A stretch of DNA of 64,000 nucleotides, taken from Tubulanus polymorphus. Its lineage: Eukaryota; Animalia; Nemertea. Position numbers and translations under genes: made by a program. The notes under the pieces were generated by a model. It was not told where the DNA came from, ran no database searches, and saw nothing but the letters and a program-made list of their open reading frames with translations. Location of the stretch: assembly GCF_964204645.1 (NCBI RefSeq), contig NC_134034.1:12908962-12972961 (forward strand). Direction: 5' to 3'. How positions within the stretch are numbered: position 1 is the stretch's first letter; each line of letters opens with the position of its first letter. Below, piece by piece: positions 32,701 to 38,700 of the stretch.

Positions 32701-35700
32701 CAGGTGTGGTGACCGGTGACCAGTCAGGTGTGGTGGCCGGTGACCAGTCAGGTGTGGTGGCCGGTGACCAGTCAGGTGTAGTGACCGGTGACCAGTCAGG
32801 TGTGGTGGACGGGTCTTTGTTAAGGCTGGTCTTTTAAAATCGGCCCCTTCACTGCATGAATACCTCAATGAAAAACAGCATGGCAACCAATAGAATCTTG
32901 AATTCCATCAGTGTCTAGTTTTATCAAACACGTAACACGTGACTGGAACAGGCGTATTGAGTTATTGATTTTACATTAGATGCTACAAAAAAGCGGCGCC
33001 GCTGCAGAATAAGACACTCATTTTACATAATCTAATTATTCGGCGGGTTAGAAATAAGAGAGAGAGACGAGCCACTCGATCTTAGAGATCTAAATCTACT
33101 TCAGTTGTTTCCTTTTCTTTCTTAATTCTTTTCTTTCTAGATCGAAGACGAAGAAGAGGCTTTCTCCGATCGATCCAGGTAAGGTCTCGTCGTGCAGACG
33201 ATACGCATCCCCGATATTAAACGCCATCCGCGCAGACACGATTTTTACATCGAAAAATCGTTAAAATCACGGTCAAAATCTTCTATACGGACATTAAACA
33301 ATTTCTGTTCACTAAGTATCCGCTAAAAATACCATAGTCTGCTATCCGCGGTGAGAGTCGTATCGTCTCCGTATTCTAACCTTGGACAACTACGATTTAC
33401 AGCAGAACACTTTAGAAAACAAGGTCCTAGTTTTCAGAAAATGACTATCGTAAAAGTCGTTTAGTATTGAACTATGAAACGATAAAATACGGCCTGTCTC
33501 AGGTAAAGCCGAATGTTCCGTTTCTCATATTCTAAAATGTATACAGTTAAAGTCCGTCATAAGTCGGCCATCCAATACCACTGCTCTCTTTTTTAAATCT
33601 TAAAATAGGGATTGTCCCTGTTATTCATTTGGTTGGTAAATTTCGTTTGAATTTTTTGATTGAGTGTCCCTTACAGACCCACCACACCTGCCGGGAGCGA
33701 AACAGGGAGAATGATTTTTGAAATCGGAAATCGAAGTTCTCTTGCTCCCTAAACGCCAGCATTTTTCACGGAACAGATTTGCTCAATCCAACTCAAATTC
33801 ATTGAAAATATTACCACGTATTCGTTAACGCTGTCACAGTCGTGTTATAACGCCATATTTTTCATCGGTCTCAACAACTGCGCCGTTATAAAGGACTTTA
33901 ACTGTATATTGAATTTCGTAATTTACAGATATAAAGCATCGTTTTGGTGGCAGTTCTATGCTGTTTTCTGGCGCTCATGGGTCGGTACTTACCGCGACGT
34001 TTACGTGTTCAATACAAGACTTATACAAACTATTGTAAGTAACATTTCGATATAACGATATAGTGTCAGAATAATTTCAATATTTCATATGTCGAGAAAA
34101 TATTCTTATTTTGTAAACGAGTTTAAAAGCTTGGCATGTGACGTCATCCGATGACATAGCACATCACGTGGCCTATGAACCATATAGATGTAGATTTAAA
34201 CAAACATGGCGGCCTACACAACCCCCTCCCCCTCAGAGGGGCGTGGACTCACTGGGTCTCCTGCTAGGCGAGCACGTAATAGAATAGAGAATGGTTTATT
34301 TCTCTCTAACCAAACATTGGTATAAAGAGGTTACAAGAATTTATACAATTAACCCATCTAGTAGCGCCCTCTATGTGAATATCCGCTTGAATAAAGACGC
34401 CCCCTGGTGGTGTATTATGTAGATCGTAGCTGTAATGGTTGGGTCAATGTTTTGGCAGTTGGATAAGACTGAGTTTGCCGGTATCACCAGCACTAACGGA
34501 GCGCTGTTCTTTACTCTTACATATAATACGTTATGGAGAGTATTCGCTACTGTTACAGTGAGTTCACCGTGGTTACCGTTTCTATAGTAACTACGTTCTA
34601 TACTAACCCGCTACCATCGACAGACGTAAACTCAAAAATAGCGCCACCTTTTAGGGAAATACGGCAGTTTGTTTATGATAAATTTTCCGAAATTGAATTG
34701 ATTTAATTTGATTTTTCTTTTTGAAATAATTTTTCGATGAATATTTTGACTGTAGGTCATGTCTATAATATTCGGTATTCTGTATTTGAGTAACGACGCG
34801 ACCTCTGGCGACGGAATCCTAGGTATCAATGGCGCTATTTTCTTTACGATCATATGGAATTCTACTCGCGTAGTAATGACGAATGTAACAGTGAGTGTCG
34901 GAACTATTCCGTCGTAGGCGGATAACGATGATTAATCGCGCATTGATCGAGTGAGGAAGCCGCTATCGATCAATACGCCCTCTATTATCAATCAGCGTAA
35001 TTAGGGGTATTCTGAATCACGTGATCTAGTCGCCATCTCCTGAGACTGGTGTCGCGGAATCAGATGCCTCAACGGCAGATTGACTGATTACATTGAAGAG
35101 TCACATCGGGGCAGCAGCTGACTTTTACCCTTCTATTGTAAGGGGGGGGGTCGTTCTATGACGCCGGTATAACAAGCTGTACGGGCGTGAATTCAAAATG
35201 TGAATCGATTGAAATATCTTTAGCAAATACAAGAAATTAAGTATTTGTGTTTATTTTGCGTTGCGACGATATTTTCAAAGTAAATATCCTACATCACGGA
35301 GCCTGCGTGTCAAGTAGTCTAGGGTACACCCTCGCGTGTTGGTTATTGGAGTGTATTTGTTTGAACCTTGTTTGAGCTTTGATGATTGAAAGTCGTGACC
35401 GCCGCTTCACTGAGAACCTCAGTATCTGATGACAAATAAGACACAAACGAACTAATATTCACAGCAGCCTACTATCATATTACTGTGACTTAAAGTCCGT
35501 ACATGATGCGATATAAATACATGTAATTATAAATAGCAAAAATGACGCAATTTCTTCACTTTGAAACAAGGCACTGTATCAGTAATACTTCGTAAGCAAC
35601 AAGATAATTTGAGCCGCAATGCGTGTCTCTCGTCGCCCGCATGCGCCTGACCGTTCAGTAAATCGATATATTCTATTTGGCGTGTATATAGGTGATATCT

Positions 35701-38700
35701 CTACTGGTGGGTGCTGTTTGGTTGGAAAGTAGCACCGTCCGCGACACAAACGGGGTCCTGTTTTACTATATCATTGCCGTATCGGGGCGTTACGTGTTTC
35801 AAACAGTTTCAGTGAGTGCGTTGTTGAGAACCTCACTAGCCGCAGCCCGCTTTCCGATAGCGAAATATATATAATTATGTATATTCAAAAGAATGAAAAT
35901 TAAATCACAATACGGAACTCAAATCAGGGGCAATACCTGTTAATTAGGGGTAGGGAGATCATCCTTAATCTCCCTCACTAGGTGGAGCCCGCGGGGGTCA
36001 GGATTCTTTATTTTGACTACTGGTCTTCAATAATTGAAAATGTTTAAATTCAAATTATGGTTTCTATGGATACAGGTAATATCGCTGGTTGTTGGATTGT
36101 TGTTTATGAGTGAAGGCGGTTCCAGTTTGAATGAAGTGGCCATTTTGAATATAAACGGTGCTTTGTTTTATATGGCTATATTTTCAACATTCCGCAATTT
36201 GATGGGAGTCATTTCAGTGAGTCGTCTGCGCGCGCACAACGCGATCACATGGCACCGAGATCACAAAAGTGATCGCATCCACCTTGTATAGGCTGTTCTA
36301 ATTTCGGTGGCGGAATATTATCAAAATTAATTAGACAATATCCGGGAGCCCGAGTGAAGTTTCCGAGTACACAGTATTAGTGCAAGTTTCAACTCCCCTC
36401 ATTGCCCGATCCACGCTCTGTTTCACCATACTCGTGAAACAGGTGATCGTGAGCTTGGTCGTAAGCGCCTGCGGCTACTACGACCGCAGCAGAAGTACAG
36501 ATGGCGCTAGCAGTCTCGATGTCAGTCCAGCAGCCGAAGAGATTGACCGGAACGATGATGTTTTTTTTTGTGATGGGATGGTATAATAGTAATACTAGAT
36601 TTTCGGAACACGCGTTTATGAAATTGTTTTGGCCGCTTGGCTTTTCGAGCTTTGAAGCTTCAAATGACAAAATAAGAGCCTCGGCATTTCACAGTTTTTA
36701 ATTCAGCGCGTTCTCTCTCCCTCTTTTATCCACGGAACAGTTAAGCGCTGTTGTGATCGGTATAAGCGCCTTCGGTGCCCAGATTTACTACGACCGCAGC
36801 GGAAGTATAGATGGCGCTAGTAGTAGTCTAGATGTCAGTCCAGCCGTTACTAAGACGTTGACCGGAATGATGATGTATTTCGTCATCAATATGACCTGGG
36901 AGAACATGATTTGGATCCTAGATGTATGAACAACACATTTACCTCGGCTCGTTCGCGAGCAATTTCCCCGCTTGGCTTTTGAGCTTTTTTGAGCTTCCAA
37001 CACGGCATTCTTAATATTCACATTTTGAATTTACGTCTGTTGCGCATGCGCGATTCGGCTTGAACGGTGTTAAAATTTGAATAATGATTATATCCACCGA
37101 ACTCGATAGATGGCGCCACACGTTTGACGGTTTACATTCATTCCGCTTCTTTCTGAAGCTCATGTTTTATTTACAGTTTTGATTTTTCAAAAAAAGAAAA
37201 ATGAAAATGTCCTACTTTTTCGTTACCAGATTGTGGCTATCTTAGCGGCAACGCTATATTACGGTCAGGACTCGTCGCAGGAAGACAGTATCATGAACAT
37301 AAATGGTTGTATGTTCTTTTTCCAAACGAACATGAGTTTCGCAAATCTGTACATGGTTCTACAAGTGAGTGGAGTGAATGTCATCCGTCAACTAGTATTA
37401 CCCCAGTCCCCACGCACATCCGTCGATTAGTGAACACGATTGTCAATAATACTGTGTACTCGGGCGGCTCCGGTCTTTGACTGTACTGGGCTGGCTCCGT
37501 ACTTTGATTGCACTGGAGTAGCTCCAGTGTTTGTAATTGAACTGGGCGGTCCGGTGTTTGAGATTGTACTCGGGCGGCTCCGATGTTTGATTTCGGGTAA
37601 ATTCAACGTTGATTTCTTAATCGCTATTTTGAATAATTTGAGGCTATGCTAAACACCTCCCACAACTCACCTAGAAAACTACCATATCCCGCGTAATATA
37701 ACCGATTAAACCGGGGTCAATTTCACACCAACCTGGATTCTAGTTGTTGTGATAATATTATCGAGAATGCTAACACATTTTCAATTATAGCAATTATTTT
37801 CAACAGTGAAATTGTACCCCCACACCCCTACGACAGTGAGCACGGACAGTGGATTGCGTTCTGTGAATTGGTAATTGCTCGAACGCAACATGATCAAAAC
37901 AAGATTCTCGATAATCATCAGAAATCAACGTAATATGTCGACCACGATTCCACTCGATAAACCGAGATATATCTTAATAAAGTGTGTCCAATTAATTGAT
38001 GGATTTATTTCGGAATAAAATTCACAGTTAAAGACACTCGAGATGTTAAACCAATGTCTCAGTAATTATCGAATGCATGGTCATCAGATTTCGAATTTTA
38101 AAACTAATATCGACCTCCTGGGGTTGCAGGAGTTATCTCAAAGTTCGATGACTCAATTAACAGTCGACACGTATAAAGGACATGATAATAGCTGTTATCT
38201 GATGGAGTTAACTCTTTTGAGAAACTGTGAAGAGGGTCCAGAATCAAGGACGAGCTATAGCTTGAAGAGCGAGCGGGTGGGGGGGAGGCGTTTGATTTGA
38301 GAAACTTTGTCCATATTGCAAATCGTCTTGCGTCTTATCTGGCATTGATTGAAGATAAAATCGGTTTTTAAATGATCTATTTTTCTAAAATGAAGTCCGA
38401 AGAAACGATTATTTACTGATTTAGATATAATCTATGATTTTAAAACGTTGATTTTAGACCAATATTGATTTTGCTCATGCGCCAAAACCGCCTACCATAA
38501 TATCATAAACAACTATATAATCAACAGTTATATTCGAATATATATTTACAACATTATTTAGAAATTAAGATCACACAAAAAGTTTATAATCATCTGTTGT
38601 GAAAAATAGATAAAAAAGAAAAACTGTTTCTAAAAATGCAAAATTGAAATGAAGATGAAAAAGAAGAATTTCAAATTATCGATTATTGAATAAATTATTA

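Follow-up and report, generated by a model that had tools for sequence, protein, structure and literature searches.

A white-like ABCG transporter gene of the nemertean Tubulanus polymorphus carries a tandem array of exon 11 variants that are very probably spliced mutually exclusively

A white-like ABCG gene with a tandem exon array

The window (the whole 64,000-nucleotide stretch that we analyzed) contains the coding region of a white-like ABCG half-transporter (Table 1). The RefSeq protein XP_074659151.1 (P0216, "protein white-like isoform X2 [Tubulanus polymorphus]") maps exactly, exon by exon, onto its 18 coding exons, with 97 to 100% identity at the eight constitutive exons tested. The nucleotide-binding domain (NBD) exons (28166-31187) lie 5' of the transmembrane domain (TMD) exons (33929-40727), which is the reverse topology of ABCG transporters, and the protein of 736 to 752 amino acids comprises one NBD followed by one ABC2-type TMD. 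Single exons match Pfam ABC_tran and ABC2_membrane, the precomputed Pfam domains of the protein are ABC_tran, ABC2_membrane_7, and ABC2_membrane, and Walker A, the ABC signature, and Walker B are all intact in the exon translations and alignments. Human ABCG2 aligns with the transporter over most of the length (E 5e-89), and in a PDB search ABCG1 and ABCG2 score equally against it. Exons were queried one at a time, and full-length comparisons relied solely on the public RefSeq proteins. The best source-named database matches beyond its own cluster are nearly all protein white or white-like at approximately 50% identity, the best matches across Metazoa bear the same names, and no match in the protein collections exceeds approximately 52% identity. 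The nearest relative of the NBD exons (P0049, 73%) sits on a 4.2-kb metagenome contig that ends before the membrane-domain exons.

Between constitutive exons 10 and 12 lie seven homologous segments, as the preliminary description had reported; we recovered the same coordinates and features. Six are intact variants of exon 11 (a, b, c, d, f, and g), each 120 to 183 nt long, a multiple of three, in phase 0, and with an open frame and AG/GT flanks. The count of five GTGAGT donors (a, b, c, d, and g) was also correct, and the donor of f is GTATGA. The seventh segment, e, is indeed a dead copy, being frameshifted, interrupted by in-frame stops, and carrying TT at the site of the GT donor of f. Its closest relative is f, to which it is approximately 85 to 90% identical, with repeat blocks at 86 to 92%. 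Among the variants, DNA-level identity is 34 to 51%. Their homology is supported by a six-variant profile, which matches the TM1b-TM2 segment of white proteins in other phyla (Ptychodera 439-482, E 4.6e-15); Pfam ABC2_membrane is matched at profile positions 30-64 by a and b and 30-70 by g, weakly and under the curated cutoff. A word-index protein search with the six-variant alignment returned no match, which is uninformative given the length window of that method. A profile scan of the whole genome found these six exons and nothing else, each variant and exon 12 is present in one copy in the genome, and a six-frame HMM scan of the window found no additional copy besides fragments of e.

Table 1. 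Features of the white-like locus, in positions of the window
Feature	Positions	Strand	Remarks
White-like ABCG half-transporter, coding region	26785..40727	+	18 coding exons, NBD first, TMD second
Constitutive coding exon 10	33929..34034	+	Encodes the connecting helix plus the TM1b start; final residues ...RLIQTI, then gtaagt
Candidate selector	34184..34201	+	Intron between exon 10 and 11a; 14/14 pairs with D1 counting G:U
Variant exon 11a	34423..34557	+	45 aa, intact; AG acceptor, GTGAGT donor; without RNA support
Candidate selector	34617..34638	+	About 60 nt downstream of 11a; pairs with D1, 18 nt, 94%
Variant exon 11b	34756..34890	+	45 aa, used; RefSeq isoform X4 and junction 34890->38763
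Candidate selectors	35175..35222	+	Downstream of 11b; 35175-35206 to D1, 35204-35222 to 38734-38752
Variant exon 11c	35692..35811	+	40 aa; donor-side junction 35811->38763 (GT..AG) alone
Variant exon 11d	36076..36216	+	47 aa, used; RefSeq isoform X2; junctions 34034->36076 and 36216->38763
Element	36363..36382	+	Downstream of 11d; complementary to 37444-37463
Dead copy 11e	36443..36589 (end approximate)	+	Frameshift, stops, donor lost
Variant exon 11f	36741..36923	+	61 aa, long extracellular loop, used; RefSeq isoform X1; junction 34034->36741
Candidate docking element D1	37016..37040	+	f-g intron; one copy in genome
Variant exon 11g	37230..37364	+	45 aa, used; RefSeq isoform X3; junction 34034->37230
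Partner of 36363-36382	37444..37463	+	80 nt downstream of 11g; D1 family
Element	38734..38752	+	Complement of 35204-35222, 11-29 nt before exon 12
Constitutive coding exon 12	38763..38855	+	Starts VFPTEMP after cag; junction target of b, c, d

RNA evidence for individual variants

RefSeq isoforms X1 (P0279), X2 (P0216), X3 (P0277), and X4 (P0278), of 752, 738, 736, and 736 amino acids, carry f, d, g, and b, respectively, one each, and are identical outside the stretch from RLIQTI to VFPTEMP. Contigs of the public RNA run X2 contain exact GT..AG junctions from exon 10 to d, f, and g and from b, c, and d to exon 12. Of the predicted paths from 34034 through each variant to 38763, both sides are thus seen for d, which is also present as a separate exon-length contig, one side each for b, c, f, and g, and none for a. 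No variant-to-variant junction is listed in the run X2 contigs, which drop rare forms, or in the RefSeq models. The junction contigs have depths of 116 and 93 for d, 60 for b, 58 for f, and 38 for g, a rough measure that gives one mean per contig and from which isoform use is not quantifiable. Because the variants and exon 12 each occur once in the genome, the junctions do not stem from retrocopies.

Support is uneven across the array. Neither the RefSeq isoforms nor run X2, the single informative run, provides RNA support for exon a, and a run X2 contig passes both splice sites of this exon unbranched. Exon c is absent from the RefSeq isoforms and has no acceptor-side junction in run X2. For copy e, no junction is listed in run X2, and a contig continues unbroken across its acceptor. 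None of the six junctions is found in run X1, where one 5148-nt contig represents the locus unspliced. No contig of X5, a possible RNA run of the same species from 2015, aligned to the window, so this run is uninformative. A single sample and study is probably the source of all the RNA evidence, and the RefSeq models were likely built from the same reads as the run contigs, so that these two lines are not independent.

From the RNA evidence, at least five of the six variants are used. The suggestion that a white/ABCG exon array is spliced mutually exclusively is borne out for b, d, f, and g, each in its own RefSeq isoform, and by half for c. The expectation of six isoforms from one gene likewise stands for those four, with c seen on the donor side and a without RNA support. 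Inclusion of g only is not what we found, as b, d, and f are also in RefSeq isoforms and c has a donor-side junction. Overall, we consider it very likely that coding exon 11 of this white-like ABCG gene has been duplicated into a tandem array whose members are spliced mutually exclusively.

The exchanged protein segment

In an alignment of isoform X3 (P0277) with human ABCG2, the variant stands opposite roughly ABCG2 residues 406-450, and the segment aligns to TM1b, the first extracellular loop (EL1), and TM2. The swapped piece would correspond to the end of TM1b, this loop, and TM2, the substrate-clamp helix of human ABCG2, and a single ATPase domain and the bulk of the membrane domain would be common to all isoforms. 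Because of the position of the piece, the isoforms would be expected to differ in the central cavity and the dimer interface. The 21 homo- and heterodimer pairings that had been counted for six isoforms are arithmetic only. In Drosophila, White functions when paired with Scarlet or Brown in a heterodimer, so pairing between White isoforms would be hypothetical.

At the equivalents of ABCG2 F431, F432, T435, N436, and F439, variant g reads FFTNF, with all five residues kept. The same positions read FFTYL in a, FFIWT in b, FYIAG in c, FYIFF in d, and MYINW in f; five of the six variants therefore replace two or more of these residues. According to the ABCG2 cryo-EM literature, the five ABCG2 residues, among them the F439 clamp, N436, and T435 of the TM2/TM5a cavity, contact substrate. 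A hydrophobic-polar-hydrophobic (two-helix) profile and an invariant glycine are kept in all six. Variant g is 51% identical to hemichordate white, and the best matches of the other variants are at 31 to 47%. With its ABCG2-like residues retained, g looks ancestral. When exon g alone was searched against the PDB, matches to Clostridioides difficile toxin A repeats were returned, which we rejected as chance: they arise from low scores added up over a repetitive 'ING..YF' motif, whereas the complete isoform aligns with ABCG2.

Divergence and selection among the copies

Between variants, pS is 0.55 to 0.87 (at least 0.66 in 14 of the 15 pairs) and pN is 0.43 to 0.62, falling below pS in 14 of the 15 pairs; the exception is b-g, at 0.55 for both. 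Synonymous sites are saturated, and therefore only the pattern of pN below pS was used, not dN/dS. A tree of the 45-residue segment is mostly unresolved, supporting solely a group of a, b, c, and d and long branches of all six variants (0.77 to 3.8, against a median of 0.13). That six frames and their splice sites survive at saturated synonymous sites while the young copy e decayed argues for selection. The fast divergence of variants that stay intact may be read as selection for distinct substrate or partner preferences. Copy e shows that duplicates are both born and lost as the array evolves and, adjoining the live f, offers a clean snapshot of the array's growth and loss.

Candidate intronic pairings

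Several introns of the array contain complementary elements (Table 1). The 10-a, a-b, and b-c introns contain sites that pair with D1, and pairing in the c-d intron is weak. The pairing of D1 with 35175-35206 (dG -36.3, z -10.8) and that with 34617-34638 (dG -23.4, z -7.3) stand out from shuffled controls, and the energy with 34184-34201 is no better than shuffles. Apart from D1, 36363-36382 pairs with 37444-37463 over 20 nt at 95% (dG -36.5, z -5.1), and 35204-35222 pairs with 38734-38752 over 19 nt at 95% (dG -18.2, z -5.3). Four tandem repeats of approximately 27 nt follow 37444-37463, at 37455-37590. A repeat origin of the complementary elements was considered and excluded, as D1 and the element downstream of 11b each occur only once in the genome at the sensitivity of the search. 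No universal docking site above shuffled controls was found in the 10-a or g-12 introns.

Our best guess is that exon choice would be made by competing long-range intron pairings. D1 would compete for three or four complementary sites, in addition to the pairs 36363/37444 and 35204/38734, and the pairings would loop out unused variants. Such a docking model would still be incomplete, with D1 positioned before g instead of before exon 12 and with only three or four partner sites.

Alternative explanations

Could only g, perhaps with d, give a working transporter, the rest being young or decaying duplicates whose in-frame splicing noise was taken up by annotation pipelines? Variant g is clearly nearest to the orthologues, the remaining variants have very long branches (0.77 to 3.8 versus 0.13), exon a is without RNA support, and e proves that copies die; moreover, all variants are multiples of three, so that inclusion would never be penalized by nonsense-mediated decay. 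Noise of this kind would nevertheless have to coexist with six frames, acceptors, and donors that persist at saturated synonymous divergence while the much younger e decayed fast, with pN below pS in 14 of 15 pairs, and with two-helix hydrophobicity and the invariant glycine in six of six variants. The d, b, and f junction contigs in run X2 are also at least as deep as those of g, by the same rough measure, and we regard the noise explanation as improbable. An assembly artefact, in which collapsed or misjoined paralogues mimic an exon array, is scarcely credible; we raised it solely because tandem repeats can be misassembled and found no support for it. The run X1 contig of 5148 nt covers 34293-39400 colinearly with 15 differences, contigs of runs X2 and X3 tile the region, RNA junctions fall at the predicted sites, and variants at 34 to 51% DNA identity are too different to be collapsed copies, so an artefact is already effectively refuted.

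The exons might instead be alternative but not strictly exclusive, with transcripts that stop or retain introns within the cluster, for instance downstream of f or of g. Run X2 contigs 36741-37259 and 37230-38211 continue unbroken through the f and g donors at depths of 52 to 62, versus 14 to 28 in neighboring intron contigs, and depth falls to 14.5 and 1.7 ahead of exon 12; in this run, many of the transcripts that use the f and g acceptors may accordingly terminate in the following intron or keep it. Readthrough of the f donor leads to a stop after one codon, and the outcome would be truncated NBD-plus-two-helix products or noncoding RNAs, the array serving partly as a regulatory device of unproductive splicing. 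However, in the RefSeq models f and g are each spliced to exon 12 within a full-length isoform, a high-depth exon joined to a low-depth intron yields the same mean contig depth, low-coverage junction paths may be deleted by assembly cleanup, and a filter drops contigs by chance. We judge this reading of nonexclusive use, with a partly regulatory array, to be unlikely.

Meaning of the array and comparison with known systems

ABCG transporters govern the membrane passage of pigment precursors, lipids, and drugs, and their range of accepted substrates depends centrally on the TM2 helix. Mutually exclusive use of the array could make this single nemertean white gene a substrate-pocket cassette system, in which six TM1b-TM2 modules would be chosen by competing intron pairings to give tissue-specific transporters with different cargo or partners; we offer this tentatively, with more doubt than confidence. 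Were it true, splicing would do here what gene-family expansion does in molluscs and arthropods, and if many other transporter genes of this genome carried similar arrays, the lineage would offer a natural experiment on the modular retuning of transporter specificity. Six versions of TM2 and its neighbor in one otherwise constant protein, each preserved intact for a long time, are ready-made chimeras for the study of ABCG specificity and dimer choice. The array also brings mutually exclusive splicing, known in the ABCC subfamily of ABC transporters, to the ABCG subfamily and to a little-studied phylum. Our analysis covers one locus in one species, and the functional differences among isoforms are presumed from their alignment.

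The white-like loci of Tegillarca (bivalve) and Ptychodera (hemichordate) are single copy with no array, none was seen in five sampled paralogue regions of the T. polymorphus genome, and there is none in the white isoforms annotated for 13 further species groups, which differ at the N terminus or in single residues only. The preliminary description knew of no mutually exclusive cluster in an ABCG gene; we likewise found none in the literature searched, and the four isoforms are already public in the RefSeq annotation. Tandem-duplicated exon substitutions have been catalogued in ABCC9, mrp, and mrp-1 (PMC9741552), and no ABCG gene is in the tandem-exon catalogues examined, that one included.

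The nearest known cases are accordingly ABCC genes. C. elegans mrp-1 has four alternative exons of 156 nt, 13A to 13D (PMC4165533). As in that gene, Drosophila MRP (CG6214), and human ABCC9, the Tubulanus array consists of tandem homologous exons of the same phase and of lengths divisible by three, one of which is chosen, and the part that varies belongs to the body of the transporter, with most of the protein common to the isoforms. Whereas the ABCC proteins are full-length transporters with a TMD before the NBD, the Tubulanus gene encodes an NBD-first ABCG half-transporter, a different part of the protein varies, and the array comprises six variants and one dead copy.

A duplicated-exon array with one exon per mRNA is also shared with Dscam1 exons 4, 6, and 9, 14-3-3 xi, Mhc, and MRP. 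Similar to docking-site and selector systems, single-copy intronic elements in Tubulanus are complementary to several intronic sites near the variants. PMC6071210 describes duplication of an exon plus one arm of an intronic stem as creating competing structures, a model that the Tubulanus complementarities fit. Unlike Dscam1-type docking, no Tubulanus site pairs at every variant, and the best candidate precedes the last variant instead of adjoining a constitutive exon; the Tubulanus array, with pairings predicted from sequence, is also much smaller than the Dscam1 clusters.

Drosophila white, scarlet, and brown and the white-like families of molluscs and arthropods belong to the same subfamily, and in those lineages, too, this scaffold has given rise to several transporters that differ in substrate range. 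Their diversity comes from separate genes, with several white-like paralogues per mollusc, and from heterodimer partners, whereas in Tubulanus it would come from exon choice within one gene. Variant g keeps the five residues of the human ABCG2 cavity named above, but ABCG2 has one fixed TM2, where the Tubulanus gene has six alternatives.

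The gene and its exon array

The array lies in a plus-strand gene whose exons code first for an ABC ATPase domain and then for a membrane domain of the ABC-2 type. Searching with a single ATPase exon led to P0216, a RefSeq protein (XP_074659151.1, 'protein white-like isoform X2 [Tubulanus polymorphus]') that shows 97 to 100% identity to the eight constitutive exons compared with it and occupies 18 coding exons of the window from 26785 to 40727, the variable exon being number 11. Outside the protein's own cluster, the next-best matches are about 50% identical, and those with a source name are nearly all white or white-like proteins of molluscs, arthropods, hemichordates, amphioxus, brachiopods, and cnidarians. 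The full isoform aligns over most of its length to human ABCG2 (E 5e-89) and ABCG1. Based on these best hits, the gene probably belongs to the white subfamily. The intron following its Walker A exon contains some 300 nt of (TA)n microsatellite (29560-29880).

The seven homologous segments reported in the preliminary description between coding exons 10 and 12 were all recovered from the sequence. None was added by a six-frame scan of the window, and the sole matches to a profile search of the whole 268-Mb genome were the six intact exons. Each intact copy is 120 to 183 nt long, a multiple of three with an open frame, and has AG just before it and GT just after; the donor is GTGAGT in five and GTATGA in f. 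Among the donors of exons 1 to 18, the constitutive exons mostly have the GTAAG type, and exon 14 is the only one of them with GTGAGT. The dead copy, e, has f as its closest relative, with blocks of 86 to 92% identity reaching into the downstream intron; compared with f, it has a frameshift, meets stops, and has TT in place of the GT donor. Among the six intact peptides, identity is only 11 to 36%, and a single glycine is invariant. They are homologous despite this low identity, because their profile picks up the same segment in white proteins from insects, Daphnia, and a hemichordate (best E 4.6e-15). There are also weak Pfam ABC2_membrane matches, under the curated cut-off and each from profile position 30, for variants a, b, and g.

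Features of the exon array, splice junctions in contigs of run X2, and complementary intron pairs; residues are the equivalents of ABCG2 F431, F432, T435, N436, and F439
Feature	Coordinates	Strand	Details	Residues
Coding exon 10	end 34034	+	...RLIQTI, donor gtaagt	
Copy a	34423-34557	+	intact	F F T Y L
Copy b	34756-34890	+	intact	F F I W T
Copy c	35692-35811	+	intact	F Y I A G
Copy d	36076-36216	+	intact	F Y I F F
Copy e	36443 to ~36589	+	dead	
Copy f	36741-36923	+	intact	M Y I N W
Copy g	37230-37364	+	intact	F F T N F (same as ABCG2)
Coding exon 12	start 38763	+	VFPTEMP, acceptor cag	
Junction 10 to d	34034->36076	+	exact GT..AG	
Junction 10 to f	34034->36741	+	exact GT..AG	
Junction 10 to g	34034->37230	+	exact GT..AG	
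Junction b to 12	34890->38763	+	exact GT..AG	
Junction c to 12	35811->38763	+	exact GT..AG	
Junction d to 12	36216->38763	+	exact GT..AG	
Pair, f-g intron	37016-37040 x 35175-35206		22/25 pairs, dG -36.3	
Pair, f-g intron	37016-37040 x 34617-34638		17/18 pairs, dG -23.4	
Pair, f-g intron and intron after exon 10	37016-37040 x 34184-34201		match with G:U pairs	
Pair, after d and after g	36363-36382 x 37444-37463		19/20 positions	
Pair, after b and just before exon 12	35204-35222 x 38734-38752		18/19 positions	

Use of the variant exons in transcripts

The 90% cluster of P0216 contains four RefSeq isoforms of 752, 738, 736, and 736 residues, which do not differ except between RLIQTI and VFPTEMP, where they carry f, d, g, and b, respectively, exactly one each. 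We placed contigs of four public sequencing runs on 33600-39400. Run X2, from the same study as X1 and of a type not recorded, provides the six junctions in the table together with those of two constitutive introns downstream; X1 gives a single unspliced 5148-nt contig over the locus and none of these junctions. Each variant, like exon 12, is present once in the genome, and the junctions are therefore derived from RNA and not from retrocopies. No variant-to-variant junctions are listed among the X2 contigs, which by their nature cannot prove absence, and none of their junctions involves e. Variants b, d, f, and g are thus documented to be used one at a time. Mutually exclusive splicing into six isoforms, as originally proposed, holds for these four; c is seen spliced to exon 12 only, and a is without RNA support. 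The RefSeq annotation and run X2 probably rest on one sample.

X2 contigs that start at the acceptors of 11f and 11g pass the donors unbroken and extend to 38211, at a depth of 52 to 62 (36741-38211) compared with 14 to 28 in neighboring intron contigs and 1.7 shortly upstream of exon 12. Transcripts that keep the intron or terminate early after f or g may therefore be common in this sample, and the read-through stretch may represent an internal 3' end or an intron that is retained or detained.

The variable piece in the protein

Alignment to ABCG2 puts the variant opposite approximately residues 406-450, covering the end of TM1b, the first extracellular loop, and TM2. In ABCG2, TM2 and TM5a line the central substrate cavity at the dimer interface, and F439, N436, and T435 contact substrates. 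All six variants retain a hydrophobic-polar-hydrophobic profile, and the loop of f is 16 residues longer. Likeness to orthologues is highest in g, at 51% to hemichordates versus 31 to 47% for the best matches of the other variants. The 21 dimer pairings put forward in the preliminary description are a matter of arithmetic. In Drosophila, White is known to form heterodimers with Scarlet or Brown, so the real number of complexes depends on the partners.

Divergence and occurrence of the array

In the segment tree, terminal branches are long in all six variants (0.77 to 3.8 versus a median of 0.13); a, b, c, and d form a group (96/91), and the remainder is without resolution. Synonymous differences (pS) are saturated or nearly so in 14 of the 15 pairs (0.66 to 0.87; 0.55 for b-g), which makes formal dN/dS unusable, and we used the pattern of pN and pS instead. 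Values of pN range from 0.43 to 0.62 and lie below pS in 14 of 15 pairs, with b-g having a pN of 0.55, equal to its pS. Despite their age, the frames, acceptors, and donors of all six variants are intact. Copy e serves as an internal control: although still about 85 to 90% identical to f, it no longer has an intact frame or a donor. We read these observations as birth-and-death evolution, in which six copies would have been long maintained and an unselected copy quickly decayed.

The variable exon is present as a single copy in each of two white-like loci from other phyla, one from the bivalve Tegillarca granosa (L002) and the other from the hemichordate Ptychodera flava (L003). No exon array was found at any of five further ABCG-like places that we sampled elsewhere in the genome of Tubulanus; three have one copy each and two have no match. 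Annotated white isoforms of 13 other species groups (crabs, shrimps, a barnacle, oysters, clams, and a sawfly) differ solely at the N-terminus or by single residues, and none is array-like. In Pomacea canaliculata, diversity arises through gene duplication and not through an exon array: at least three neighboring white-like genes with consecutive locus tags (C0Q70_00305, _00307, and _00308) and one RefSeq protein (our P0135, P0205, P0227, and P0220) belong to a 45-Mb contig, and the P0135 model is truncated in the TM1-TM2 region. A white-family protein of Phthorimaea operculella (P0001, KAI5634672.1) carries four tandem copies of its signature/Walker B segment and repeated C-terminal pieces, which is probably a gene-model or assembly artefact and could hide duplicated exons.

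How exclusivity might be enforced

Two variants included together would keep the frame, and nonsense-mediated decay therefore cannot police the choice. Steric hindrance between splice sites looks unlikely given inter-variant introns of 153 to 801 nt, and all splice sites look to be U2-type. Several long-range complementary intron pairs (see the table) are unlikely to be chance matches and occur only once in the genome, and we tentatively raise the possibility that variant choice might be made by competition among such pairings. This would resemble the competing-structure principle of Dscam1, 14-3-3 xi, and MRP. The pairings also fit a proposal that an exon duplicated with one arm of an intronic stem gives rise to competing selectors (PMC6071210). 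Among the pairings we found no one docking site serving all variants, and the main docking candidate sits before g, not before exon 12.

Just downstream of 11g, 37455-37590 holds four tandem copies of an approximately 27-nt unit (TGTACTCGGGCGGCTCCG...), the first of which overlaps the pairing partner of 36363-36382. The window has seven occurrences of a CTCF-like motif, CGCC[AC][CT]CT..T[AG][GT], versus 0.2 expected. Three occurrences are within 600 nt of the array, one just upstream of 11a (34398-34410) and two 85 to 98 nt downstream of the 11a and 11b donors (34642-34654 and 34976-34988); the motif may be a protein-binding site or may belong to the duplication unit as a conserved intronic element. 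Others lie at 63534-63546 and 63642-63654, and at 265 and 22964 in coding exons of BAMBI-like genes. Open stretches at 184-516 (minus strand) and 22582-22989 (plus strand), 22 kb apart, encode related cysteine-rich ectodomains, both with 'CC[KT]D.CN', which by eye resemble TGF-beta receptor or BAMBI-type domains.

Comparison with known clusters

The array is a set of natural exchanges of TM2 within an otherwise constant ABCG protein and gives a clear snapshot of birth and death, at a single locus of one non-model palaeonemertean species and with isoform functions that are predicted. The four isoforms are public in RefSeq, and as far as we can tell the raw fact is undescribed. We found no mutually exclusive cluster in an ABCG or white gene in the literature searched, and ABCG is absent from the human and cross-species exon catalogues examined, in agreement with the earlier statement that none was known. 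Exons 13A-D of Caenorhabditis elegans mrp-1 form such a cluster (PMC4165533), as do exons of Drosophila MRP and human ABCC9 (PMC9741552). These known ABC transporter clusters are all in the ABCC subfamily, whereas that of Tubulanus is in an ABCG/white gene.
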